This document shows positions 673 through 64,000 of a stretch of DNA of 64,000 nt, one piece after another. Origin of the DNA: Rebecca billardiae RCC1528. Lineage: Eukaryota > Protista > Haptophyta. The stretch covers positions 1,550,001-1,614,000 of the forward strand of contig OZ251225.1 in the NCBI GenBank assembly GCA_965240325.2, in the 5' to 3' direction. Position numbers and translations under genes: made by a program. The notes under the pieces are model-generated. The model made no database searches, had not been told where the DNA came from, and saw nothing but the letters and a program-made list of their open reading frames with translations. The stretch's first letter is position 1. Every line of letters begins with the position of its first letter.

Positions 673-961
673 GGTACAGTTTATTTACTAAGAGTAAGAG
701 ACGCACACAGCTCAGGCAGGCGAGATTGACGCCCGCCAACTGTCACCGCCCATGAACTGATGAAGCCGTCGCCGATGGTAGCGCCGAAGGAAAATTCGTT
801 CAGCCGTCCGCCTGCGAGGCCTGGATGAGGGCTGCGGCCGCCTCGCGGCGCGCCAGCGCCCGTCGTCCTCGCCCCACCGTCGTCCACAGTCCGCCGGTCC
901 ACACTGTCACCGTCCACACAACGTCGTCGTCCGAACTCGCCGACTGAGTGGGCGCCGATGC
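673..961 (-). repeat. Dispersed ~290-bp repeat ending in the conserved ~50-bp motif (..CTCGCCTGCCTGAGCTGTGTGCGTCTCTTAYTCTTAGTAAA..CTGTAC)
   Basis: Reverse complement aligns by eye with 35630-35905; the terminal motif also occurs at 21509-21547/23518-23530, 47763-47812 and 49204-49254. Confidence 0.8.
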
Positions 962-1491
962 AACAGCGCGCCGACAGGATGAGGATGAGGATGTAGCACG
1001 GGGGCGTTCCCCGCATTGGTCATACGCCAAATTGAACCACCTTCCTATTGCAACGAGCTTCCTTCATTTGAAGCGGGTACGTTTGAATACGGGAAAAGGC
1101 AAAGCCCCCGCAGCGGGGGCTTTGCTTTTCACGAGCGTGTGGCAGGATCCCGGCGCGGAACGCCCTTGAGGGAACGTGGAGCCCCACTGTCGGTTGGGGA
1201 AGGCGTGTATCAAGCGGCATGACTGGGGTAGCTTATCACACAGAAGGCCTGGCCCTCAGGTGATATGTGCCCCGGTATGGCGTGTCGGCCTCAAGGCCGG
1301 CGGCAGGGTTCTGTTGCCCGGAGGGTTCGCTGGCTCACCAGCGGCGAGGGCCGGGGCGTCCAGTATGTATGGGGTTTACAAGGTCAAGGGCGGTAGGGTT
1401 TATCCATGAACACCGCGGCGGCCGGGCCCGGCGGCCCATAATAATTTATTCGGGCCGGAAACTGCTTCGTGGAGTGTCGACTGCATCAAAG

Positions 1492-6738: not shown

Positions 6739-9164
6739 CGGCAGCGCTAAATCAGCCCGGGCTGATTTAAGCTTATCTCAGCCCGGGCTGATTTAAGCCC
6801 TTAAATCAGCCCGGGCTGAGATAAGCTCCGCGCGAGCTTATCTCAGCCCGGGCTGAGATAAGCGCTTATCTCAGCCCAGCGGCTCGCGACTCGGCCGCCG
6901 TGGACTCGGAGCGCACGTCGCGCGGTGCGGCCCGCCCGCTCCATGGCTGCACGCGCTGCTGTGTCTTCGGTGGCCACAGGGTGAAGTGCGCTGAGTCTAG
7001 TGGCGGGCCCAGCTCCACCCACCCCCTTCTCCCTGGCCCGCCCCGCCTGCCCTCGCCCGCATCGGATGCCTTCCTCGCGCATGCAACGGCCTCAGCCAAC
7101 GCCATTGTTCCACCATCGATTCCACCATCGACGGTCGCGGGTACTTGTACGTCGTGTACTGTACATGTGTGTCATGTGTAATCGCACGCATGTGGCCACG
7201 GCCCACGTGCACCTGTCTGCCGTGTGCCGTCGCCCTTGTACCGCGTTGCCCTTGTACCGTTCGCGCGTTGCGGCATGTGCTTGCCCAGCTTGGCATACTT
7301 GCCGGTCACGCTCGACGCTGGATCAGCCAGTCATCGCGATCCCGTCAGATCGAAACGGTCCCTTCGCGCGGCGCACTACTCTGCGCGGCGGCTGCCGGTT
7401 CATGACCGAGCTTGGACCATCAGCTGACAGCTGTGGTGTGCGGCTCGCTGCGTCTCAAGCGTGGCAGGCGCTTCGGCAGAGTAATACACTGTCGACGGTC
7501 GTGGCGCCGCAGCTGGTGGGCTCACCGGCGCCCTCGCGCTCGCAGCTTTCGGCGCGCTTGGCGAGCACGCCAAGGTCGCCGCGCGCACCGTGGTCCGCGT
7601 GCACACAACGGCCGCCGCGCGCGCCGCAGCCGTCTTGCGCGCCGCAGCCGGCGAGCGCGCTGCGGCCGGCGAGCGCGCCGCGGCTGCTGAGCGCGCCCGG
7701 CCGGTGAGCGCGCCGCGGCTGCCGCGCGCCGCGCGGCTGGCGATTGCGCCGCGGCTGCCACGCGCGCTGCGGCCGGTAAGCGCGCCACGGCGGCAGACAG
7801 CGTAACTCGGCCGTCGCGCCCGGCCGGCGAGCGCGCCGTGGCTGCTGCGCGCGCCGCGGCTGCCGCGCGCGCCGCGGCTGGCGAGCGCGCCGAGGCCGAC
7901 CAACGCGCCGCGACCGCCCCGCGCACGGCGACCGAAGGCGAGTCTGTGGCGGATAGCGAGCTTGCCGCTGCGGCTAGTGAGCGCGCCGCAACCGGCGCGG
8001 ATGGATGGTGCAGCCGGGGCTTGCGCCACCGCGACCGGTGAGCAGGCCGCGCCAGCATGCGTAGGTATTGGCGAGCGCGCCACCGCAACCGGCGAGCGCG
8101 CACCGCACGGGCCACAGATGCCCATTGGTCCAACGCCGCAGGTGCCCATCAAGCCTGGCGCCAACACGTGACAGTTGCGCGATGAGGCTGAGCGTGCTCG
8201 CCGGCCGCTGCGCGCTCACTGGCCGCGGCGGCGCGCTCGCTCGCTATCCGCCACAGACTAGCCTTCGGTCGTCGCGCACGGCCGCGGCGCGCTGGTCCGC
8301 CGCGGCGCGCGCGGCAGCCACGGCGCGCGCGGCAACCGCGGCGCGCGCGGCGGCCACCGCGCGCGTGGCGCATGCGGCGGCCGCTGCGTGCGTGCGGACC
8401 GCGGCGCACACCGCAACCTTAGCTTGCTGTCCGTGCGCACCAGCCCCTGAGCCGCGGCACGCGCTGCGAGCTTTGCGTGCTCGCCGTGCGCGCCGACAGC
8501 TGCGGGCGTGCCGGCGTCGGCGCGCCCACTAGCCGCAGCGCCATGATCGTCCATGGAGCTGCGCCGGTGCCCATGCCTGTGCCGCTGGCACCGGTACGCC
8601 CGCGCGCGGCGGCCGCGGTGGCAACGTTCAGCACATTTTGAACAACGTGCAATGGCAACAGCACACAACCGACTGTAGCGCACGGGCCGTGTTCACCCGC
8701 GTGCGACTACGCGCGGACATGGTCAACTGGCGAACGTCGATGGTGCGTCCATGGTGTTGGCTGCATGCTTCTCATGCGGGCAGCAAGTCCACAAGCCGAG
8801 TTGCCGCCGTGGAGTTGCATGCGCGAGGAAGGCATCCGATGCGGGCGAGGGCAGGCGGGGCGGGCCAGGGAGAAGGGGGTGGGTGGAGCTGGACGCCCGC
8901 CACTAGACTCAGCGCACTTCACCCTGTGGCCACCGAAGACACAGCAGCGCGTGCAGCCATGGAGCGGGCGGGCCGCACCGCGCGACGTGCGCTCCGAGTC
9001 CACGGTGGCCGAGTCGCGAGCCGCTGGGCTGATTTAAGCCCTTAAATCAGCCCGGGCTGAGATAAGCTCCGCGCGAGCTTATCTCAGCCCGGGCTGATTT
9101 AAGGGCTTAAATCAGCCCGGGCTGAGATAAGCTTAAATCAGCCCGGGCTGATTTAGCGCTGCCG
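6739..9164. mobile_element. Non-autonomous Mutator/foldback-like element with ~350-bp TIRs and 9-bp TSD
   Basis: TIRs 6739-7087 / 8814-9164 (CGGCAGCGCTAAATCAGCCC..); TSD GGCGGCTCA at 6730-6738 and 9165-9173. Confidence 0.85.
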
Positions 9165-17392: not shown

Positions 17393-17430
<38 letters not shown>

Positions 17431-17643
17431 CGACGTGGCAGCATCGGACAAGCGTCAGGCTCAGAGTGCGACAGACACATAAAATGCGTCCGCGCCTTCC
17501 GTCCAGCCTCCAGGTCAGACAGTGCGCCAGCCGCAGCCCTGCCCCCCCGCTACGGGAGCGGGGCCGGGAGTGCAGAGCACCGCCTCGGCCTGGGGCACGC
17601 GGCGGCGACGGCAGATGCCGCCGCAGCCGAGCGCCTTCCGGAG
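17393..17643 (+). repeat. (TA)n followed by microsatellite-anchored repeat, type A
   Basis: GACGACGTGGCAGCATCGGACAAGCGTCAGG.. matches 27313-27516, 47942-48123 and 48899-49075. Confidence 0.8.
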
Positions 17644-21376: not shown

Positions 21377-21547
21377 AATATTGCGACAGCACTGGCACGG
21401 CCCGCCGACCCCCCCGCCCGCCAGGGCAGAGTTTTAGACGACGAATTAGCGTACGTACCTCGGCGGGCACAGCACTCGCGTGTCAAGCGACTGCGATGGC
21501 GGAGAGTGTAATCTCGCCTGCCTGAGCTGTGTGCGTCTCTTATTCTT

Positions 21548-23517
21548 GGTTGTATAACCGCTCGGTTATGCGGGTATAACTCACCGGTAGCCCCCATGAG
21601 GGCGGGCTGGCAGCCAGGGTCCGGCTGCCTGGAGGTTTTCCGGTCGTCAAGCCGAGCCAGGCCCGGATTGGGCGCGGGTCTGGATTTGCTCAGCAGCTGC
21701 TCGGCAAGCGATGCGCGTCTGGGTGCGGCCGCGCTCGCTGGCTGCACCCGCGGCGCTGCGGCCGGCGTGGCTGCTCTGGTCACCGCTGCGCTGGTGGCTG
21801 CTCCTCCTCTGGGAGTTGTTTCTTCCAGGTGCGTGTGCGTCGGCGGTAGGCCGCCCTCAGCCCTCGCTCTCTCCACTCGTGCACCTGCCCTGCTTGCTCT
21901 CTGCTTTCGATGGGGGCGCCTCGGAGCCGCTTCGAGGCGTCCCCGTCTGCAATCTTCTCATGCTCTATCTGCTTTCGATGGGGGCGCCTCGGAACCGCTT
22001 CGAGGCGTCCCCGTCTGCAATCTATCTTCTCATGCTCTGCTTTCGATGGGGGTGCCTCGGAACCGCTTCGAGGCGTCCCCGTCTGCAATCTTCTCATGCT
22101 CTGCTTTCGATGGGGGCGCCTCGGAACCGCTTCGAGGCGTCCCCGTCTGCAATCTTCTCATGCTCTGCTTTCGATGGGGGCGCCTGGGAACCGCTCCCAG
22201 GCGTCCCCGTCTGCAATCTTCTCACGCTTCGCAGTCTCGCTTGCCTTCATCGCCTGGCGGGTGGGTGCTGCTCTCTCCTTCTCTGCCGCCTCCTCTGCAG
22301 TCTGCCGTGCACTGCTGTGTGTGGGATGCGACCTGCTACCTTATCTGACGCTACGCGTGCGTGTCTCGCGCCTGCTCCCCGCCTGCGCCGCCGCCGCCGC
22401 GCATGTCTTCGTGCCCACTGTCGCATGCCGTCTGGATCGTCCTTACTCATACAACCCTGCGGGGAGCCCCTCTGGGCCTCTGCCGCCTTCGGTCCTCGCG
22501 CTACCCCTTCGGCGGCCTCGGCCTCTTCGGGCCCCCGGCCACCACCCCTGCGGGGTGTGGCATTCCACACCTCCTTCTGGGTGGAGGCCCTCGAGGCCTC
22601 TGCCTCCTGGGGCGCCGCGCTCTGCCCAAACTTGCGTTGGGGGGGGGGGGCGTCGGCTGCCAGCGCCTGCGGTCTACGTGCTCCATCGAGTACTTCCTCT
22701 TCGGCGTCTAGGCGGTCATCGGCTTCTGTCGGCGTAGTTGCTCGAATGCATCGGCGAGTCCTTCCTGGTCGGCGTCGCATCCTGGACGGCTTCGGGGGTG
22801 TGACCTAGTCACCTCACGCGTTTATCAACGCGGCCCCCACCTCAATCTACTCTCATGTGGGTCTACCGAGTGAGTTATGGTTGTATAACCGCTCGGTTAT
22901 GCGGGTATAACTCACCGGTAGCCCTCATGAGGGCGGGCTGGCAGCCAGGGTCCGGCTGCCTGGAGGTTTTCCGGTCGTCAAGCCGAGCCAGGCCCGGATT
23001 GGGCGCGGGTCTGGATTTGCTCAGCAGCTGCTCGGCAAGCGATGCGCGTCTGGGTGCGGCCGCGCTCGCTGGCTGCACCCGCGGCGCTGCGGCCGGCGTG
23101 GCTGCTCTGGTCACCGCTGCGCTGGTGGCTGCTCCTCCTCTGGGAGTTGTTTCTCCCTGCCCTCCCACCCTGCTGGTTGCTGGGTGGGCATGGCCTTGGG
23201 TGCGCGCGGTGTCGGGGGGGTGGAGGCCCTCGAGGCCTCTGCCTCCTGGGGCGCCGCGCTCTGCCCAAACTTGCGTTGGGGGGGGGGGGCGTCGGCTGCC
23301 AGCGCCTGCGGTCTACGTGCTCCATCGAGTACTTCCTCTTCGGCGTCTAGGCGGTCATCGGCTTCTGTCGGCGTAGTTGCTCGAATGCATCGGCGAGTCC
23401 TTCCTGGTCGGCGTCGCATCCTGGACGGCTTCGGGGGTGTGACCTAGTCACCTCACGCGTTTATCAACGCGGCCCCCACCTCAATCTACTCTCATGTGGG
23501 TCTACCGAGTGAGTTAT
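21548..23517 (+). mobile_element. Non-autonomous tyrosine-recombinase retrotransposon (TOC1/PAT/Ngaro-like split direct repeats)
   Basis: A1 21548-21823, B1 22579-22878, A2 22879-23154, 63-bp unique, B2 23218-23517; no TSD; internal tandem repeats. Confidence 0.85.
21894..22224 (+). repeat. Tandem repeat, 5 x 64-68 bp, inside the TOC1-like element
   Basis: GCTTTCGATGGGGG at 21903, 21971, 22039, 22103 and 22167. Confidence 0.9.
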
Positions 23518-25017
23518 AGTAAACTGTACCAGCCAGATCCGGTGGACTGGCGCGGGCCGGGCGGACGCACGTGTGCGGCACCGGAAGCCCTCTCTGCAGC
23601 TCGTCACCAGGCGCGCCCGTCCTGGGTGACGCAGCCGGGCGACGCGCGCGCCAGCCGGTGCGCTGCGCACAAGCTGGCCGGCATGGTCGACGTGAAGCGC
23701 CCCAAGTGTGATCACACCGGCTGCACCACGCGGCCTTACTTCGGCATGCCGGGCGACGCGCGCGCCAGCCGGTGCGCTACGCACAAGCTGGCCGGCATGG
23801 TCGACGTGAAGCGCCCCAAGTGTGATCACACCGGCTGCACCACGCGGCCTTCGTTCGGCATGCCGGGCGACGCGCGCGCCAGCCGGTGCGCTACGCACAA
23901 GTTGGCCGGTATGGTTGACGTGAAGAGCCCCAAGTGTGATCACACTGGCTGCACCACGCGGCCTTACTTCGGCATGCCGGGCGACGCGCGCGCCAGCCGG
24001 TGCGCTACGCACAAGCTGGCCGGTATGGTGAGGAGCCCCAAGTGTGATCAGACCGGCTGCACCAAGGTGCCGTACTTCGGCATGCCGGGCGAGCGGCGCG
24101 CCAGCCGGTGCGCTACGCACAAGCTGGCCGGCATGGTTGACGTGAAGAGCCCCAAGTGTGATCACACCGGCTGCACCACGAGGCCTTCGTTCGGCATGCC
24201 GGGCGACGCGCGCGCCAGCCGGTGCGCTACGCACAAGCTGGCCGGCATGGTCGACGTGAGCCACCCCAAGTGTGGTCACACCGGCTGCACCAAGCAGCCT
24301 TACTTTGGCATGCCGGGCGAGCGGCGCGCCAGCCGGTGCGCTACGCACAAGCTGGCCGGCATGGTCAACGTGGTGAGACCCGAATGTGATCACGTGGGCT
24401 GCACCACGCAGCCTTCGTTCGGCATGCCGGGCGACGCGCGCGCCAGCCGGTGCGCTACGCACAAGCTGGCCGGCATGGTCGACGTGAAGAGCCCCAAGTG
24501 TGGTCACGCGGGCTGCACCAAGGGGCCTTACTTCGGCATGCCGGGCGAGCGGCGCGCCAGCTGGTGCGCTACGCACAAGCTGGCCGGCATGGTCAACGTG
24601 GTGAGCCCCGAATGTGATCACGTGGGCTGCACCACGCAGCCTTCGTTCGGCATGCCGGGCGACGCGCGCGCCAGCCGGTGCGCTACGCACAAGCTGGCCG
24701 GCATGGTTAACACTCAGATCGCCGTCCCCAAGCGCAGGCTGGAGCATAGCACCAGCGACCACGGCACGCGCGCAGCGAAGCGACGGCACAAACCCACCAG
24801 CCACCTCGTCACTGTACTGGACGCCGCCCCGCAGCTGCCCCAACCACCGCCGCCGCTGGTCGGGACACTCGAGGGAGGCAACGGGGCGGATTGCCGAACG
24901 CCGCCACACGGTGACACTGAAGATGGGTCTGACCATTGGACGGTGATGGCATCCGATCTGTCATTCTCGTCCGACGATGATAAATTCGGATGCATGACGA
25001 TGCTGATGCACTGCTGA
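23494..25017 (+). CDS. EsV-1-7 cysteine-rich repeat protein (~9.5 x 38-aa repeats)
   Basis: Tandem 114-bp units encoding C.H.GCT..P.FGMPG..RASRCATHKLAGMVDV, the EsV-1-7 consensus; 5' end abuts the TE so the native start is uncertain. Confidence 0.8.
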   Translation: MWVYRVSYSKLYQPDPVDWRGPGGRTCAAPEALSAARHQARPSWVTQPGDARASRCAAHKLAGMVDVKRPKCDHTGCTTRPYFGMPGDARASRCATHKLAGMVDVKRPKCDHTGCTTRPSFGMPGDARASRCATHKLAGMVDVKSPKCDHTGCTTRPYFGMPGDARASRCATHKLAGMVRSPKCDQTGCTKVPYFGMPGERRASRCATHKLAGMVDVKSPKCDHTGCTTRPSFGMPGDARASRCATHKLAGMVDVSHPKCGHTGCTKQPYFGMPGERRASRCATHKLAGMVNVVRPECDHVGCTTQPSFGMPGDARASRCATHKLAGMVDVKSPKCGHAGCTKGPYFGMPGERRASWCATHKLAGMVNVVSPECDHVGCTTQPSFGMPGDARASRCATHKLAGMVNTQIAVPKRRLEHSTSDHGTRAAKRRHKPTSHLVTVLDAAPQLPQPPPPLVGTLEGGNGADCRTPPHGDTEDGSDHWTVMASDLSFSSDDDKFGCMTMLMHC

Positions 25018-27315: not shown

Positions 27316-27509
27316 ACGACGTGGTATGCAACGGGCAAGCGTCAGGCTCAGAGTGCAGCAGACACATATCAGAATGCGTCCGCGCCTTCCAACCAGGTCA
27401 GGCAGTGCGCCACCCGCAGCCCTGCCCCCCTATGGGAGCGGGGCCGGGATGCCCGGATGGAGCACCGCCTCGGCCTGGGGCACGCCGCGGCTGCCCGCGG
27501 CCGAGCGCC

Positions 27510-32988: not shown

Positions 32989-35415
32989 TCACACGACCTT
33001 GTTGAGGCGTCGCACGACGCCGCCTGACGACTTGACGAGCGAGGGCTGGCCGCGGGGTCGGATGACCTCATCCGAGTCATCCGCGCCGTCGGCGGCATCG
33101 GCCGAGTCGGCGGTCGCCGCATCAGGTGGCGCGGACTCAGAGCCGGCCACAGGCGTGCGTGACTCATCAGACGCAGCCGTCTTTGCAGCAGCGCCGTCCG
33201 CAGCGGCGGGCGCGCTCTCCGCCGCCCTGAGGCGCGCGCGGGCCGTGGGCGCGGAGCGCAACGGCAGCGTGTGAGCGAGAGCTTGGTGGCTGCGGGCGTG
33301 CCTCGCGCGGGCACGCGCAGCGGCGGTGGGCGGCGGCGCACCTGCGCCGAATCTCCTTGAACGCATCCAGATTCGCGTAGTACAGCCCAGTCTGCGGGTC
33401 TCGGTACTTTGCCGGCAGGCCGGTGATGGCGCACACTTTGGCGGCCGGGCCTGTGGCGCGGCAGGGCGCGCGTCGCATGTGGTGGTTGAGTGCACGTCTC
33501 CGCACCCGTGCTGAGCGATGGGCGCGGCGGGTCGGCGGCGGTGCCGAGCGCGCACCGATCACGTCGGCGGGCTTTGGCTTCGCAGCCTTGCCCTCGTCCG
33601 CCGCGCGCGCGCCCACAACCTCCGGTGTCTCCAGATCCGCCGCCGGCGCCCCTGTCTCCGGGGCGTCTGCCGCGGGCGCGCTCAGCGCACCGCCGAGGGC
33701 GGCGCCGCCGTCGTCGGCCGCGGCCGCGTCGGCGGGCGCCTCCGCGGCGCCATACTTGGCCGCCGCCGCCTCGCGGCGCTCCTGCTCGCGCGCGCGGTCG
33801 AACTCAAAGCGCACCCAGCTCGCGTGCACGCCGTCGAGCGCCTCCGAGCCCGGCGCAGGCGCCAGCCCGGCGCGCTCGCCCAGCTCGAGCACCTTGTGGC
33901 AGTACGCGCGCTTCGCCTCCTTGTGCACCTCGACGAGGAAGCGCGCGGACTCGACGCTGAGCGTGGCGCGCGGCGCGAGCACCTTGCACAGGAACGCCGC
34001 GAGCAGGTGCGCCGCGTGCGAGCCCACGTGCGCGTGCGCGAACCGGCCGCCGAGCCGCGCCTTGCCGAGCGTGTCGAGAGGGGAGCCCGTGAGAAGCAGC
34101 AGGCGGAACTTGGGCAGCGCCTGCAGCCGGCGGCGCGCGAGCTCGCGCTGCTTGGCGGCGCGCTGCTCGGCCTCGGCGGCGGCGGCGGCAGCTGCGGCCT
34201 CCGCGCTCAGCGCGCCGCCGCCGCCCTCCTCCTCCTCCTCCTCCTCCTCGGCGCCCCCCTCCTGCACCTGCTGCAGCGGGCGCGGGCCCGGCTGGTCGGA
34301 GCGCAGGAACCCCTTCTGCCAGCCCGCGCCCACCGACGAGCCGTACGCAAAGTCGTCGAAGTCCTCCTGCTTCACGCCGAACGGCTTGCCCGTCTCCAGC
34401 CGGTGGAACCAGCCGACCACGTTGTAGTACGCCACGTCGCACGCCGTCTTGAGCTGCTGCTCCGAGCGCCGCTGGAAGAAGCGCGAGTCGTCGCACTCGA
34501 CGCCGAGCGCGGCGTACGGCGAGTTGACGACGTCGCCCCAGAAGCCGCGCTTGAGCACCGAGGCGCCGCGCTGCTTGCCCGCCGCGCTCGAGGCGAGCGA
34601 GCGGTTCGGGCTGTCGTACGCCGCGTCGCGCAGCTCGAACGCCAGCCCGCTCATCCGCCACTCGCGGAAGTGCACGCGGTGAATGATCGGCGCGGTCTCG
34701 ACGAGGCCCATCGAGTAGTCCCAGTCGAGGACGTTGCGCCGGTGGTCGTACCGGTCCTTGTAGAAGGCGCGCAGCCGCTCGTCGCGCAGCTTGACCACGT
34801 CGAACGGCACGCCCTCGAGCCACGTGCCCACCGCCTCCTCGAGCGCATCCTTCTGCTTCATCTTGAGGCCGGAGAGGTCAAACAGCGGCGCGAGCGGCCC
34901 TTCGCCCCGCGCGAGCGCGCGCTTGAGCTCCTGCGCGCGCGCCGCGACGTACGCGGCGGTGCGCTCGCGCAGGACGACGTTCGCGAACACCTGCGCGCGC
35001 GAAGGCGGGCGCGCGCGAGCACGTCGGTCAGCGCTCGCCCGGCCCGACTCGGGCGGCGGGAGGCGGGCGGCGCGGCGCGCGCGCGGCGGCATACCTCGAG
35101 CCAGACTTCGGCGCGCTCGCGGCGAGGCAGCTCAAAGTCGAGCGCAATGGCGACGAGGAGCAGGTGCCGCGCGAGCGCCTCGGGCGTGTCCTCGTACACG
35201 GCGAACTCGAGCTCGCGCTCGGACGGCGCACCCTCTCGCGCGCGCGCGCGCGCGAGCGTGTGCAGGATGTGGCGCGCATCGCCCGGGCAGAGCAGCAGCG
35301 TCGCGTGTGGCATCGAATCGTCCGCAGGGGGCTCCGCCGAGGCCTCGCGCACGTCGTACGACGGCGAGAAGCCCCAGAAGCGGTGTGGCCCGGAGCCGGG
35401 GAGCTGGTGAGCCAT
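32989..35415 (-). CDS. DNAAF3: Dynein axonemal assembly factor 3 (PF22) with YL1_C-like C-terminal domain; introns 34991-35094, 33451-33555, 33227-33341
   Basis: FWGFSP..GDARHIL.T..EALARHLLL (DUF4470); RLR.FY..RYD.R.N..DWDY, EWR.SG.AFE, PNRSLAS, GFWGDVVNSPY (DUF4471); GT-AG splices keep frame. Confidence 0.88.
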
Positions 35416-35629: not shown

Positions 35630-35905
35630 CGCATCGGCGCGGCGCGCTGTCGCATCGGCGCCCAGTCGGCGAGTTCGGACGACGACGTTTTGTGGACGAC
35701 GGTGGGGCGAGGACGACGGGCGCTCACGCTGGCGCGCCGCGAGGCGGCCGCAGCCCTCATCCAGGCCTCGCAGGCGGACGGCTGAACGATTTTTTCCGGC
35801 GGCGCTACCATCGGCGACGGCTTCATGGGCGGTGACAGTTGGCGGGCGTCAATCTCGCCTGCCTGAGCTGTGTGCGTACCTCTTATTCTTAGTCAACTGC
35901 AGTAC
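35630..35905 (+). repeat. Second copy of the ~290-bp repeat with a degenerate terminal motif
   Basis: Homologous to 673-961. Confidence 0.8.
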
Positions 35906-41995: not shown

Positions 41996-44573
41996 GAGAC
42001 CCCTTCAGGGAAATCGGCCTCGGCTTGGGTCAGCGCGCCGCTGGTGGCTTGGGTCGCACCCAAGCCACTCGCGGCTTGGCTTGGGTCAGGGAGATCATAC
42101 GGAATGCCGCTCAGATCATATGCCGTGCGCGCATGCGCGCGGCCTCGCGGCCGTGCACGGCCGCGCACGGCCGCGCACGGCCGCGGCGGGCCGGCATTGG
42201 CGGTCGCACACCAGCGCTGGGGTGCGTGGCACCCGCCCGCGCCCTCGGGGCGTGCCCGCACGCCCTCCTCCGCCGCCGCGCAGCGCGCTTGTGCCTGCGG
42301 CCTCGCGGCCCGCCTGGGCGCGCCGAAAGCACGGGCGCACACCGAGCCGCTTGTGGCGCATCAGGCCCGGCGCGTGGGCGCATGGCATGGTCATTAGTGA
42401 GCATACGCCGTCGGGCTTTCGCGATGCCGGCTGCGCGGAGCCTCCCGACCACGAGCACCGCGCGTTGCGCAGCCGAGCCCAGGCAGTGGCCGGGCTGACC
42501 GCTCGGACGCTCGGCGCCGCCAAGCGACACATCCGCGGTCAGGACGAGGCGGCACGCAGCGTATGCGGCAGCTGTAGACTACGTGTCATGCGCCAAGCCG
42601 CGTGCGGAGTGTCAGAACGACCATCTTAGCCCTCACGATCGTGCCGCGCGTGGGGATTGCACACAAGCAGTGCTCGAGCCCGCTCCGACCGCAGGCGTCG
42701 AGCTGGGAAAGCCGTGGAGTGCTGCGCGCCGGCGCGCGCGCGCGCGAGGCAGGCCTGCGCGCGGCATCGCCCGCGCCTCGGCCATCCTATCGAGCGTGCT
42801 GCACTGTGAACATGATGCCAGCGGGGGCGTGATGTCAGCTATCGCCTTGTTGCGGAACGGAACACCTCCGCCACCCGCCAGCCTACTGGAGCGCTCAGCT
42901 CAGCGCTGTTGTGGCAATGCTGTGTGTGTTCGGCTGACAGCGCGAGGCAACGTTTGACAGCATGTCTTCTGCGCACGTGTGCCTACTAGGTGCGGTAGGC
43001 CTTGTAGAACCTCAACCCGGGACTACTCGTTGCTTGTACCAGATGAGTGCGCAGAGTCAGCACTCTGACTCAGCACGTCACTGCTGTCAGTGGTGTGCCA
43101 GCAGCGCCCAGGCTGCCGGTGCTTGAGACGGCGATGCATCGAAGCCGCTAAAGACATTGCACGCTCGGAGTAGACCACGATCGCAAGTCTGCATCGGAGA
43201 ACAGAACGCGTCCGGTGTACTCGCATGCCCTATCACAGATCGCTGCTGCAAGTATACCCGTGTCACATCAGACGAGTTGTCTGCCCCGGCACTCGGAATT
43301 GCTGAGGGCCGCGCGGGCCGAGCAAGCTATCAGGTCGCCACTCAGCTGCGATGAGTTGCCAGTTGATGCCATCACTACAGCTCAGCCGAGCGGGCAAACC
43401 TAAGAGCGCGTCTCAAGAGCGGCAAAAGCTGCATCATAGTCTTACTGTGACCGCTGTGCTGGCATCATCGCGAGCTCGTGGGCAACAGACGTCACAGCAC
43501 ATCGTCCAAGGCGTAGCCGACAGCGCTAAGCGTATGCTTGCGCGCGTAGATCCAAGATTGCCTCACTCTAGAAGGCGTGGCTCATCTGCTGCTCGCAGTA
43601 GTCGACCAGATATACAGATCAAGCGCGAGAACGGTGTGTAGTGCAGCGGGCGCATCATCGGCGACGCTACTGTCTTCGACTGAGGGCGTGACTGAGAACT
43701 GTCACCATGTGCCAAGCCCATGATGATGTAGGCAGCGCGCACTCACCACACCGGTATATCATTGGTGCAAGCACGCTCGATAGGATGGCCGAGGCGCGGG
43801 CGATGCCGCGCGCAGGCCTGCCTCGCGCGCGCGCGCGCCGGCGCGCAGCACTCCACGGCTTTCCCAGCTCGACGCCTGCGGTCGGAGCGGGCTCGAGCAC
43901 TGCTTGTGTGCAATCCCCACGCGCGGCACGATCGTGAGGGCTAAGATGGTCGTTCTGACACTCCGCACGCGGCTTGGCGCATGACACGTAGTCTATAGCT
44001 GCCGCATGCGCTGCGTGCCGCCTCGTCCTGACCGCGGATGTGTCGCTTGGCGGCGCCGAGCGTCCGAGCGGTCAGCCCGGCCACTGCCTGGGCTCGGCTG
44101 CGCAACGCGCGGTGCTCGTGGTCGGGAGGCTCCGCGCAGCCGGCATCGCGAAAGCCCGACGGCGTATGCTCACTAATGACCATGCCATGCGCCCACGCGC
44201 CGGGCCTGATGCGCCACAAGCGGCTCGGTGTGCGCCCGTGCTTTCGGCGCGCCCAGGCACAAGCGAGGCCGCAGGCACAAGCGCGCTGCGCGGCGGCGGA
44301 GGAGGGCGTGCGGGCACGCCCCGAGGGCGCGGGCGGGTGCCACGCACCCCAGCGCTGGTGTGCGACCGCCAATGCCGGCCCGCCGCGCCCGTGCGCGGCC
44401 GTGCGCGGCCGTGCACGGCCGCGAGGCCGCGCGCATGCGCGCACGGCATATGATCTGAGCGGCATTCCGTATGATCTCCCTGACCCAAGCCAAGCCGCGA
44501 GTGGCTTGGGTGCGACCCAAGCCACCAGCGGCGCGCTGACCCAAGCCGAGGCCGATTTCCCTGAAGGGGTCTC
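41996..44573. mobile_element. Non-autonomous DNA transposon with ~810-bp TIRs, GAG..CTC termini and 5-bp TSD
   Basis: TIRs 41996-42804 / 43765-44573; GGTTG at 41991-41995 and 44574-44578; ~960-bp stop-riddled interior. Confidence 0.88.
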
Positions 44574-47759: not shown

Positions 47760-49256
<1,497 letters not shown>

Positions 49257-55849: not shown

Positions 55850-56085
55850 CTGGCATCGGTGACGAGCAACCCGGGGCTGACGTAGCAGTAAGGCATGAGC
55901 TGACGAGCTCCTCCCTGATCAGCCAATCAGCGCGTTAGTTGTACAGTTTACTATGATTTAACGTGCAGTAGGCCAGTAGCAATCAAACCGCATTACCCAC
56001 ACTGTTTTGACCAACTGGAACGGGCCGCGACCCCGGACCCGACGAGTCATCTACTCACCAACTCGGACGGGCACCACCTAACGTC

Positions 56086-60179: not shown

Positions 60180-60383
60180 ACTATAATAATATATATTGTG
60201 ATAATATATATATAACGTGATTATAATATATATATATATATTAACGACGTGGTATGCAACGGGCAGGCGTCAGAGTCAGCAAGCTGTAGCAGCAGATCGA
60301 GCAGCAGAGACAAACACCAGGGTCAGCGCTCCTCGCCGTCGTCCCCCCCCCTCGTGGTCGCCCATCACTCCATCGCCGAGCGG
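60180..60383 (+). repeat. TA-rich tract plus microsatellite-anchored repeat, type B
   Basis: TTAACGACGTGGTATGCAACGGGCAGG.. is near-identical to 48140-48283. Confidence 0.85.
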
Positions 60384-60752: not shown

Positions 60753-61706
60753 TCAACGCCAGGCATACGGGTAGTAGGGGGCTGGTTGCCTTGGCACCAT
60801 CATTGGCACCATGACGTACGACACTTGGCCCTCGTCGTGCGCGCCAGGCGGGCCCATCATGCCAGGATGCGGGGCGTAAACCATGCCCGGGGGAGCATGC
60901 ATCACGCTCGGCGGAGTGGCGGGGTGCATCATCACCATGCCGGAGGGATTGGCGTGCACCACGCCGCCAGGAGGAGGAGCGTGCATCACGTTGCCATAGT
61001 AAGGAGGACCGGACATGGTCATCGGCGTCGCCTCGCCGTAGGACGACGGCACAGGCGCCATAATCTGCGTCGTGACGTGCACTGTCGGCGAGAACGGCTG
61101 CGCCGTCGGCTGCGCGATGACCGTCGGGAAGGGTGGCCCGGCGGTGCTGTTCGCCGCCTGCCTTCGCTGGCGCTTTGGGTTGCCCTGCTGCTGCACATTG
61201 CCAGCGGCGTCTGTGCTCGTGCGCGTGCGCATCGCGACTTGGCCGACCATGCCGGGTAGCCTGTGCAACGCGCACCGCCTGGCACGCGTATCGCCCGGCA
61301 TGCCAAACGACGGCAGCTTCGCGCAGCCGGCGAAATCGCACGTGCGATGTTTCACATCGACCATGCCGGCGAGCTTGTGTGCTGCGCACCGCCTGGCGCG
61401 CCGGTCCCCTGGCACGCCGTAGGACGGCAGTTTCACGCAGCCGGCATGGTCGCACGTGCGGTGTCTCACGTCAATCATGCCGGCCAGTTTGTGCTCAGCA
61501 CATCGCGTCGCGCACGTGGCACCCGGCAGGCCGTACGACGGCAGCTTTGAGCAGCCCGCGTGATCGCACGGGCGATTCTTGACGTCGACCATGCCTTCGA
61601 GCTTGTGGGCGTTGCACCGGCTGGCACGCGAGTCGCCTGGCATGCCGTACGACGGCACCTTGTCACAGTCAGGGCACTCGCACATGCGGCTCACCACCTC
61701 GGCCAT
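60753..61706 (-). CDS. EsV-1-7 repeat protein (4 repeats) with Pro/Met-rich tail
   Basis: Repeats C.HAGC.KLPSYG.PG..RA.RC..HKLAGM.DV; ATG at 61706. Confidence 0.82.
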   Translation of the reverse strand: MAEVVSRMCECPDCDKVPSYGMPGDSRASRCNAHKLEGMVDVKNRPCDHAGCSKLPSYGLPGATCATRCAEHKLAGMIDVRHRTCDHAGCVKLPSYGVPGDRRARRCAAHKLAGMVDVKHRTCDFAGCAKLPSFGMPGDTRARRCALHRLPGMVGQVAMRTRTSTDAAGNVQQQGNPKRQRRQAANSTAGPPFPTVIAQPTAQPFSPTVHVTTQIMAPVPSSYGEATPMTMSGPPYYGNVMHAPPPGGVVHANPSGMVMMHPATPPSVMHAPPGMVYAPHPGMMGPPGAHDEGQVSYVMVPMMVPRQPAPYYPYAWR

Positions 61707-64000
61707 GACTGCCTTGCCGAGTGGGCGTTCGCCCCCTTTTGATGTTGTCGACCCCAGGAGAGGTGCTTGGTTGGCTCGCTGCCAGTAGATGCTGCGGTGA
61801 CGAGCGCGACGCGCGTGAGAACCTCTTGAAGCCAATTTCACGTGCCCCGAAGGTGCGCGAACGGGTATGCGACGTTTCAGAATCAGTCGGCCTGTCCTTC
61901 CGAATCCTCGCGCAAGGCGTCAGCTGCGAGTGAGCTGTCCCACCCCTGACAAGCGCCGACTTCGCACTATCTACGCCGGTACGAGTAATTAGGACTAATT
62001 GGCGCGCAGATTTTTCACGAACCCACCACAATCACATTCTTCACCCGGACAAATTCAAGCGCAGGCGCACAAGTTTCGAATCCGTCAGAGGAAGCAAAAA
62101 GCATTTTGACTAACCATATCGTACCCGCATTTGCCTATCATTCATTCAACGACTACGCGATAAAATAATGTTTAGCGGGAACTCTTGCCCATCTACCCAA
62201 GTACCGTACCCATCAAAGATCGAACATGAAAAAATAGAGAGGGCATTGTACCATTGTTGGACACTTGGACTAATGAGGTGTATGATAATGTAGGTACCGA
62301 TGGGCGTCTTACTTACTTACGGCAATCGAAGCTTCCATCGGGACAAACCGCCAAGATAGGGGAATCCACGATCGTCCAACCTTCCGCTCAGAAGCTCCCC
62401 CCCTAAGACGCTTGGGCCCGCCCGGCCCGTGATGTGCATGCGCAGCGGAGGCGCGCGGTCGAAGTCGCGCTTCGCCGCGTCTGAAAAAGCGCCGTGGTAC
62501 CTTTGCGCGCGCTGCGCGCCACTGGGCGCACGGTGGCGGCCGCGCGCCGCCGCGCGGGCCGCATCCTCGCGGCCACTGCCGCCACCGCGAGGCCGCGCGC
62601 TCGGGCTGGGTGGGCTGCCAGCCGCGCGTAGGAGCCCGCCGCGCGCGCCCGGCCCGGCTCGCGGCCTACTCGCCGCCCGTGCGCTCGGCACGCGGCCGGC
62701 GCGACCCGGGCGGCGTGGCGCGCGAGGTTCGCGCGCCCGCTCGCCGGGCGCGTGAGCGAGTCGGGCGCGTTCGGTCGGCGGCGCCTGAGGGAGCGTGTCC
62801 CTCACGAGCTGTAGCGAGCCGGGCTCCCTCGCCTCGACGCCCGAGGCGGTGCGCCGCGCGCGTTCTGTGCCGGTCTGCGGCGGCGCAGTGGCTGCGCTCG
62901 CGCACGGATGGCCGCTGGACTTGGATGGGCGCTCTCGAGCGCGTTTGGCGGCGGATCCCACGCGGAGCGCTGGTGCATGCACAGCGACCCGCTCTGTCCG
63001 CCCCCAGCCCGCCTCGTGACGGAGGCCTTGCCCATCGACCGCTCGCGCGCCTCACCGCCGGTGCTAGACCGGAGTCGGGCATGGGCCGCACGCGCCGCGC
63101 GGGCCGCACGCGCCGCGCGGGCCGCGCGCGCGCCCGGTCAGCCCACGAAGGTGGCGCGGCATCTGGCGGCACGCGAGGGCAATGCATTTGCAGCAGCCTA
63201 CAGTACCTTTCAGCTGGCATCTCTGCTCAGCCGGTCGCACTCGTTTCTCGCCTTGCTCAGCGCTCGTGCATCTTCATGCCTGCGGTGCTGGAGGAGTGCC
63301 CTCCTGCTGCAGTCATGACCACTGGCTGCAGCCCTTTGAGTGCGCTAGCTGGCAGCGTTCACAGACATGCGGCGCGCGGCGCGTGCTGCTGTCCGCGCCT
63401 AATGAGCCCACAGCTGTGCTGACCTTGGCACAGCAGGGCACAAAGCGCTGCTATTGCCCATAGCAGTGACAGTGTGCCGAGCCGACTGAGCACCGGCTGC
63501 GCATGCGCACAAGCTGAGCTAGCAGGCCCAGCTAGAGTGTTGGCGAGCGACATGCGCAGTTGATGCAGCCTGGGCCGCCCGAGCGCAGCCGCACACGCCC
63601 GTCTCACGGCCGTGCTAGGCATGCCGTGCCCGTGGCTGTGAGTGCGCGCTGTTCACTCAGCAGTTAGCTGCACTCTGAGCTCTGTACTCACTGAGTCACT
63701 GTAGTGTGCGCGAGCCCGCGCGTGTGCAGTGCCGACAGCTCTGCCAGACTCGCCAGAGCCCGAGCAGCAGCACGGATGTAGGGAACGTACAGCACCTGTT
63801 GAGCGGACGACGCTGCTTGACACCCGTTGCCATGCGCACCTGGGACCGCACCACCCGGGCCCGGCCTGCTGATGAGTAGTGTCGACCGCAACTCAGGCAG
63901 GCGACGAGCAGATAGTCGATTGCTGACATCTGCTTATTGACAATCTGCTTCGATTTCCAACTCCAAGACCAAGTAGCCTGCTGGCTGACTGGCGCCTCGG

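Follow-up and report, generated by a model that had tools for sequence, protein, structure and literature searches.

The window, a stretch of 64,000 nucleotides of Rebecca billardiae RCC1528 (contig OZ251225.1, positions 1,550,001 to 1,614,000), contains a 1,970-bp element with split direct repeats in the order A1-internal-B1-A2-B2 (Table 1). The host genome is intron-poor, with a size of 72 Mb and a G+C content of 69%. The element starts with GGTTG at position 21548 and ends with GAGTTAT at position 23517. B1 abuts A2 directly, and this joint (GAGTTAT|GGTTG) repeats, within the element, the presumed junction of the circle. The size and the split-repeat layout of tyrosine-recombinase retroelements, which the original prediction had proposed, were borne out by the junctions and the repeat identities. 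No Pfam domain was found in the longest open reading frame of the element. The genome contains at least 56 matches to the element with identities of 86–100% (93–100% for the matches that cover most of it), and its B-end 13-mer occurs 90 times. The window element is young, non-coding, and non-autonomous, and its family is young and comprises about 50 copies.

Table 1. Mobile-element features in the window (positions count from the first nucleotide of the window).
Feature	Position	Strand	Remarks
Near full-length E1 copy	684–1361	-	~170-bp insertion; degenerate tail (motif 684–726)
Left 38 nt of a 47-nt, 5′-truncated LINE tail (T1)	21510–21547	+	E1 positions 420–457 of 466
Split-direct-repeat element, non-coding	21548–23517	+	1,970 bp; A1-internal-B1-A2-spacer-B2
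Repeat A1	21548–21826	+	277/279 identical to A2
Internal region	21827–22578		Holds five tandem units
Five tandem units in the internal region	21888–22228	+	64–68 nt each; repeat-family comparison
Repeat B1	22579–22878	+	300/300 identical to B2
Repeat A2	22879–23157	+	
Spacer	23158–23217	+	60 nt; present between A2 and B2 only
Repeat B2	23218–23517	+	
Right 9 nt of the split LINE tail	23518–23528	+	AGTAAACTG, with the TA found after most sampled tails
E1 block truncated at position 215	35640–35899	+	Degenerate tail (motif 35852–35899)
44-nt LINE tail, E1 423–466	47765–47808	+	Intact motif 47765–47811; left end of a perfect palindrome
44-nt LINE tail	49208–49251	-	Intact motif 49205–49251; right end of the palindrome begun at 47765
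24-nt T2-type tail	55944–55967	-	TTAAATCA context

The element interrupts a conserved motif, the left half of which ends with ...TCTTATTCTT at position 21547 and the right half of which (AGTAAACTGTACC) begins at position 23518. Joining the flanks gives back the motif exactly, with the target bases neither duplicated nor lost, which confirms the predicted split at CTT|AGT without a target-site duplication (TSD). The two intact and two degenerate motif copies that had been reported elsewhere in the window were located at nearly the predicted positions. All three sequences proposed to precede the 13-mer of the motif exist as well (TTATTCT, GAGTTA, and TTAAATCA); GAGTTA, which had been taken for a third upstream family, reflects this one insertion only, as its junction GAGTTAT|AGTAAAC has a single occurrence in the 72-Mb genome. 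The element landed once and cleanly in a 47-nt, 5′-truncated LINE copy (described below), within its A+T-rich end.

The 13-mer is present 4 times in the window and absent from shuffled sequences, and the genome contains 671 copies of it compared with 3 of the reversed control. The motif (designated T1) comprises the terminal ~46–47 nt of a 466-nt 3′ block, E1. At six loci, an Exo_endo_phos match, an RVT_1 match, E1, and the 13-mer lie on one strand in this order with constant spacing: (i) the Exo_endo_phos matches are ~1.4 kb upstream of the reverse transcriptase (RT) and share one open frame with it; and (ii) E1 starts 4,558–4,584 bp downstream of the RVT_1 matches on the same strand. On the minus strand of C5, for example, the endonuclease (111942), the RT (109668), E1 (104915), and the 13-mer (104642) are colinear. 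The coordinates indicate that full-length copies with an RT end in T1; a candidate for such a full LINE lies at C17:676337 to ~684400. The T1 copies start at E1 positions 1, 201, 215, 271, 273, 310, 375, 390, 407, and on to 442, and all of them end at the identical 3′ base, forming a 5′-truncation series with a common 3′ end. About half of the tails are cut in the loop of a hairpin, leaving a stub of 44–47 nt, and the starts of the copies examined peak at E1 positions 420–423. As judged from sequence, the conserved motif is the 3′ terminal tail of an APE-type LINE, of which the genome holds at least 683 short tails. The abundance of the motif reflects the hundreds of short 3′ ends left behind by retroposition rather than a role as a docking site.

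The TTAAATCA context, T2, is the tail of a 1.27-kb non-autonomous retroposon and is homologous to T1. The final 110 nt of the two families are identical at 70 of 110 aligned positions, and the hairpin is at the same place in both. The T2 copies also form a truncation series, with starts from position 1 to position 714 of the 755-nt query, and they reach the query end or stop within 1–2 bases of it, except for five short partial matches. The alignments place the 13-mer at the 3′ end of a single group of related repeats, which comprises the tail of the LINE and the tail of its non-autonomous relative.

To place the window insertion among its relatives, 30 of 76 candidate element loci were sampled. 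The A1-internal-B1-A2-B2 layout recurs in other fetched copies, several of which are 3′-truncated ahead of B2; one copy (L036) has an extra A-spacer-B unit. The flanks of the 30 loci are unrelated to each other, and no TSD was found flanking the 20 copies for which both ends were available. The 5′ flanks of the 30 copies share A at −2 (22/30), T at −1 (21/30), T at −4 (17/30), and A at −6 (18/30), and 18 of 20 copies have a purine at +1. Read as endings, the flanks terminate with T in 21, AT in 15, and TAT in 8 of the 30 copies, to be compared with the TTAT of the B end. The resulting short consensus, A-n-T-T-A-T|purine, mimics the B|A junction of the element itself, its flank positions echoing the B end AGTTAT; the logo from the 30 copies thereby supports the predicted likeness between the internal B|A junction and the target. 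The 20-nt targets have an average A+T content of 52%, compared with 31% for the window.

A target-preference matrix was trained on just 24 sites, all of which are away from LINE tails. With this matrix, TTATTCTT|AGT scores 8.3 bits and ranks among the best 0.1% of positions when both strands of the restored window are considered, and CTT|AGT is the highest-scoring position inside T1. The B|A joint of the element is in the top 0.07% by the same matrix. Among the 30 sampled copies, 24 are away from LINE tails, 3 or 4 are inside tails, and 2 more are within 62 bp of a tail. The tails make up ~0.1% of the genome, and the share of element copies inside them is far above this value. We attribute this excess to sequence preference, as suggested by a matrix based on 24 sites only. 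Because the tail carries one of the best target matches of the window, one tail insertion among ~50 copies needs no special explanation.

We consider it very likely that an element of the DIRS order inserted into a LINE tail and that the motif is not a shared docking site. The same high confidence covers, jointly with the landing in a LINE tail, the placement of the element with the Ngaro/PAT/TOC1-type members of this order, which is based on the A1-internal-B1-A2-B2 layout. From this layout and from what is known of the family, a circle would form from the whole element, the B2|A1 joint of which would be identical to the B1|A2 joint inside the element (GAGTTAT|GGTTG). A trans-acting tyrosine recombinase would then cross the B|A joint with a genomic site, for which a short and loose match (A-n-T-T-A-T followed by a purine) would suffice, and integration would leave the target bases neither duplicated nor lost. 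The "retro" step is assumed from the layout alone.

Coarse Pfam scans of the genome revealed one detectable tyrosine-recombinase family, with five copies that are 100% identical over 213 residues; each match scores 25 bits, which is under the cut-off, yet has the H-x-x-R and Y motifs. Intact copies are located at C18:1305087, C23:1222413, and C33:128821. None of the 55 RVT_1 matches is near the recombinases or near the B ends of the element, and these scans found no autonomous partner that has an RT beside the recombinase or the same A/B repeats. A word search retrieved five relatives of the recombinase with identities of 36–55%, and in an atlas search it matched only "Tyr recombinase domain" clusters; neither search separates DIRS-type from Crypton-type recombinases. 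The element could alternatively be a DNA cassette moved as a double-stranded circle by an RT-less, Crypton-like recombinase, with the split repeats as tandem copies of the junction that recombination left behind. The sole detected recombinase family, lacking a nearby RVT_1, would suit this reading, as would the recombinase copy that directly adjoins an element copy (L038) and the extra A-spacer-B unit of L036, which is expected of recombination between a circle and a junction. Cryptons are recombinase-only DNA transposons that likewise lack terminal inverted repeats and TSDs and have short terminal direct repeats of 4–6 bp as recombination substrates (PMC3212892). By contrast, the A1-[internal]-B1A2B2 arrangement of split direct repeats is a hallmark of recombinase retroelement families (PMC8547959, PMC7192593), the unit amplified to ~50 copies is dimer-like rather than a single A-B unit, four of the five recombinase copies are not near any element copy, and the coarse scans may miss a DIRS-type RT or a second recombinase. 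On balance, we regard movement by such a recombinase as unlikely. Similarly improbable is its extended form, in which the element is mobilised as DNA by the RT-less family and LINE tails and (AT)n tracts are favoured landing pads that mimic the B|A core. If DNA mobilisation were true, the A1...B1A2B2 layout would not be exclusive to retroelements.

The original prediction went further and proposed that the 13-mer region is an att-like site that several families use and that every insertion restores, so that elements stack there like cassettes. The exact split without duplication is in accordance with this proposal, as are the tandem and inverted stacks of tails separated by TA and a second element copy (L035) in a T2-like tail, 3 nt from the CTT|AGT position. 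However, the other sampled copies of the element sit at unrelated sites, mostly away from tails, and the 13-mer forms the 3′ end of a single related repeat group: both of the upstream "families" are homologous retroposon tails with 5′-truncation series, and the third junction is unique in the genome. In addition, the preference matrix learned elsewhere predicts CTT|AGT, the stacks consist of tails only, and no other element family was seen at the CTT|AGT position in 41 tail copies or in further T-repeat loci. The att-like site is close to refuted, and we assign it a very small probability. Tail-only stacking is consistent with repeated target-primed insertion at TA or with template jumping there.

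The flanks of the tails raise the question of whether T1 and T2 are instead the terminal inverted repeats (CAGT...ACTG ends, with a duplicated TA) of Tc1/mariner-type MITEs, one of which was hit by the element. In favour of this reading, TA comes after the ...AAACTG end of the tail in 86 of 100 listed copies, the unit is in most cases preceded by TA or T, and short inverted pairs occur in a few places (L061, L062, and L020). The tails also lack the long TSDs of variable length that are typical of LINEs, which counts against the LINE identity: 39 of 41 tail copies have no flank repeat of at least 8 nt, and the exceptions are L025, with a 16-nt repeat, and L016, in which a 14-nt match represents nested tail sequence. 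Against MITEs, most tail copies are solitary over a range of 1.5 kb, without an inverted partner, and the unit has two unrelated ends that are not inverted repeats of each other. This identity was dropped on the basis of the solitary copies, the continuous truncation series of 5′ ends, and the colinearity of the tail with the endonuclease-RT frame at six loci, and we consider it hardly credible. A Helitron (A|TC start, T after the end) was rejected owing to the lack of a 3′ hairpin-CTRR, and an introner was rejected because an intron would be longer than this unit; both readings gave way to the LINE link. A ribozyme at the truncation hot spot was also rejected, as an Rfam search with gathering thresholds yielded no match for the window, and E1 gave only a chance miRNA-like match (E = 0.26).

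The LINE tail removes the tempting idea of an integron-like docking site common to several element families in a eukaryote. In its place, the annotation gains a young split-repeat family whose target preference can be measured and resembles its own junction. The short LINE tails might readily be misannotated as MITEs or as regulatory motifs.

LINE/SINE pairs of the stringent type, such as UnaL2 and UnaSINE1 of eel, have a common structured 3′ tail without poly(A). The two tail families here likewise consist of an autonomous LINE and a non-autonomous partner with a conserved 3′ stem-loop end and many 5′-truncated copies. Unlike those of UnaL2 and UnaSINE1, the tails in this genome are flanked by TA only, occur in tandem and inverted arrays, and are in about half of the cases 44–47-nt stubs. 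With Cryptons, this genome shares detected recombinase genes that have no RT nearby, whereas A1...B1A2B2 repeats are not described for Cryptons and the window element encodes nothing. In DIRS elements, the target is defined by a short circle-joint sequence, which therefore borders each copy on either side (PMC7192593). Similar to the junction trinucleotide rule of DIRS-1, the 5′ flanks of the present family resemble the B end TTAT, but the match is longer and less strict (A-n-T-T-A-T|R), and the window copy shares the final T only. TOC1 of Chlamydomonas reinhardtii is a non-autonomous DIRS element; it and the window element are both non-autonomous, recently active, copy-number variable, and of the recombinase-retroelement order (PMC9940879), and "TOC1-like" is for the window element a structural label only, set on layout rather than on sequence. 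Compared with Ngaro/PAT-like elements, the window element is only 1,970 bp in length, lacks gag, RT, RNase H, and recombinase genes, has the 60-nt spacer that separates A2 from B2, and has no autonomous relative with the same repeats among those found. The split-repeat layout and the absence of a TSD are common to it and the Ngaro/PAT-like elements of the DIRS order, such as the Ngaros of Cafeteria burkhardae, and both the Cafeteria Ngaros and the window element are G+C-rich and land in the A+T-rich DNA of another mobile element (PMC8547959).

The left part of the motif, ...TCTTATTCTT, stops at position 21547, and GGTTG opens the 1,970-bp element at position 21548; the element closes with ...GAGTTAT at position 23517, directly followed by AGTAAACTGTACC. 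Joining the two flanks reconstitutes the intact motif without adding or removing a single base, which confirms the exact split at CTT|AGT without a target-site duplication that had been read from the sequence. The other copies of the motif in the window were also recovered, intact at 47765–47811 and 49205–49251 and degenerate at 684–726 and 35852–35899. The insertion, a split-repeat element in a LINE tail, is therefore real and was precisely described. The A repeats are identical at 277 of 279 positions and the B repeats at 300 of 300. Another copy of the element (L036, G000 C8:2500118–2505137) has an additional A-spacer-B unit, giving the order A-int-B-A-x-B-A-x-B, which points to recombination across the B|A joint (the B1-A2 junction, GAGTTAT|GGTTG).

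Locations of the parts of the element (window positions) and of the recombinase copies (assembly G000)
Feature	Location	Remark
A1	21548–21826	
Internal region	21827–22578	five tandem units of 64–68 nt
B1	22579–22878	
A2	22879–23157	
Spacer	between A2 and B2	60 nt
B2	23218–23517	
Recombinase copies	C12:523105, C18:1305087, C23:1222413, C33:128821, C38:20749	

A first reading of the motif as a Tc1/mariner repeat was rejected because the inverted partner is absent within 1.5 kb for most copies. The 13-mer of the motif occurs 4 times in the window versus none in shuffled sequences, and 671 times in the 72-Mb assembly versus 3 times for the reversed control. In 30 sampled loci, it is preceded by one of two related 33–36-nt stretches (T1 or T2), and the outer sequence on either side of these tails is unrelated from copy to copy. 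The T1 end is present in at least 683 copies in the genome; among the 100 T1 copies listed, 86 have a conserved part that ends in ...AAACTG, followed by TA and then by any base. Longer copies revealed that T1 is the 3′ end of a 466-nt block (E1); at six loci, this block starts 4,558–4,584 bp downstream of a same-strand RVT_1 match. Exo_endo_phos matches are located approximately 1.4 kb upstream of the reverse transcriptase (RT) in the same open frame, and contig C5 shows the endonuclease, RT, E1, and 13-mer in colinear order on its minus strand. The T1 copies start at E1 positions 1, 201, 215, 271, 273, 310, 375, 390, 407, and on to 442, with an identical 3′ end throughout this truncation series. 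T2 is the end of a 1.27-kb element that has a similar 5′-truncation series and no RT nearby; over their terminal 110 nt, the T1 and T2 families are identical at 70 of 110 aligned positions, and a hairpin forms at the same place in both. The colinear RT and endonuclease, the shared 3′ end, the truncation series, and the T1/T2 homology thus identify the motif as a 3′ tail common to a LINE and its non-autonomous relative. Its high copy number reflects the usual debris of truncated retroposons, and six such tails are present in the window. The LINE, known here by the coordinates of its matches, encodes its endonuclease and RT within open frames that span 1,880–3,371 codons (G000 C17:676337–684400, C11:2613027–2620800, C12:1142684–1150700, and others), or 2,218–3,371 codons where the endonuclease match shares the RT frame, and its RT is separated from the 3′ block by an unusually long distance of 4.57 kb.

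The element has at least 56 matches in the genome at 86–100% identity (93–100% where most of the element is spanned), and its B-end 13-mer occurs 90 times. The flanks of the 30 fetched element loci are mutually unrelated and show no duplication; the remaining copies are known by their coordinates. Their common pattern comprises A at −2 (22/30), T at −1 (21/30), T at −4 (17/30), and A at −6 (18/30) on the 5′ side, and a purine at +1 in 18 of 20 on the 3′ side. This pattern equals the B end (AGTTAT) followed by a purine, so the targets resemble the element’s own B|A joint, as had been proposed for the B1-A2 junction. The targets average 52% A+T versus 31% in the background, and several lie within (AT)n tracts.

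The original prediction of an att-like site common to several families is not supported. The window copy is the only one of 30 at CTT|AGT; the L035 copy occupies a T2-like tail at a position 3 nt beyond, another one or two (L051 and L052) are inserted at other points in tails, and a further two (L040 and L043) are no more than 62 bp from a tail. With about 0.1% of the genome occupied by tails, these copies represent an enrichment. According to a position matrix trained on only 24 element sites, all away from tails, TTATTCTT|AGT scores 8.3 bits; no other position within T1 scores as high, and over both strands of the restored window it ranks among the top 0.1% of all positions, compared with the top 0.07% for the B|A joint. 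Thus, the general preference predicts the exact cut, and a dedicated site is unneeded. In addition, the joint GAGTTAT|AGTAAAC occurs once in the genome. The other copies sit at unrelated sites, and the 13-mer is simply one repeat’s end in two related forms; both findings count against the original prediction.

Approximately half of the tail copies start at E1 positions 420–423, within the 7-nt loop of the hairpin conserved in the T1 and T2 families; L075:1482–1537 (E1 positions 411–466) is one of the T1 copies that represent this region. A stalled RT should not be expected to stop at this loop, and Rfam revealed no ribozyme at the hot spot. No target duplication longer than TA was found around the tails, which are flanked by TA only. 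Tails also occur in tandem T-TA-T and inverted T-TA-T stacks. A repeat family of at least five copies (L064 and L070–L073) bears a chimeric tail that joins T1 positions 1–43 to T2 from position 9, reaching T2 position 43 in complete copies, and its flanks are identical on either side; such a tail could have arisen by template switching between the RNAs of two tails. The stacks and the chimeric tail may have formed by successive insertions at TA or by template jumping there.

The window genes are long intron-free ORFs of 69% G+C. The ORF just downstream of the insertion (23494–25017, plus strand) contains ten EsV-1-7 cysteine-rich repeats (E = 3.7e-138), and a related 114-nt repeat array is inverted at 61244–61713; a 641-codon ORF (33167–35092, minus strand) joins DUF4471 to a YL1_C domain. 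A perfect 1.5-kb palindrome (47760–49256) has an (AT)n core and a TA-flanked 44-nt LINE tail at each outer end, and its arm sequence recurs near microsatellites (17422–17506, 27371–27451, and 60234–60358) and in locus L007. Possible interpretations of this palindrome are a foldback element, an inverted duplication, and an artefact of assembly. Two further large inverted repeats (41996–44573 and 6739–9164), one with arms of 311 and 489 nt (100% complementarity) and the other with arms of 270 nt (96%), showed no LINE tail at their ends. Tandem arrays with a period of ~2.09 kb (G000 C34:8591–27417, C18:227864–234147, C11:675974–682232, C15:1939703–1943814, and C4:11197–15390), two of which lie close to contig ends, were found via the one-mismatch match GAGTTATTGTAAAC.

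The element family combines a split-repeat layout, clean integration, junction-like targets, and youth. We propose that the whole element would close into a circle with the joint B2|A1, and that a tyrosine recombinase supplied in trans would cross this joint with the target. The Pfam recombinase model matched five loci only, at 25 bits, just below the cut-off. These loci are 100% identical over 213 residues, contain the H-x-x-R and terminal tyrosine motifs, and group with eukaryotic recombinase-domain clusters. The C12 copy (L038) directly adjoins an element copy and has an in-frame stop there; none of the remaining four, known by their coordinates, is near an element copy. No RVT_1 match is near any of the five loci, and a DNA-only, Crypton-like route for the element is conceivable but improbable. 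For DIRS elements, site choice has been proposed to depend on a short sequence at the circle junction (PMC7192593), and the junction-like targets of the element agree with this proposal; they are likewise consistent with Cryptons, which employ short terminal repeats (PMC3212892).
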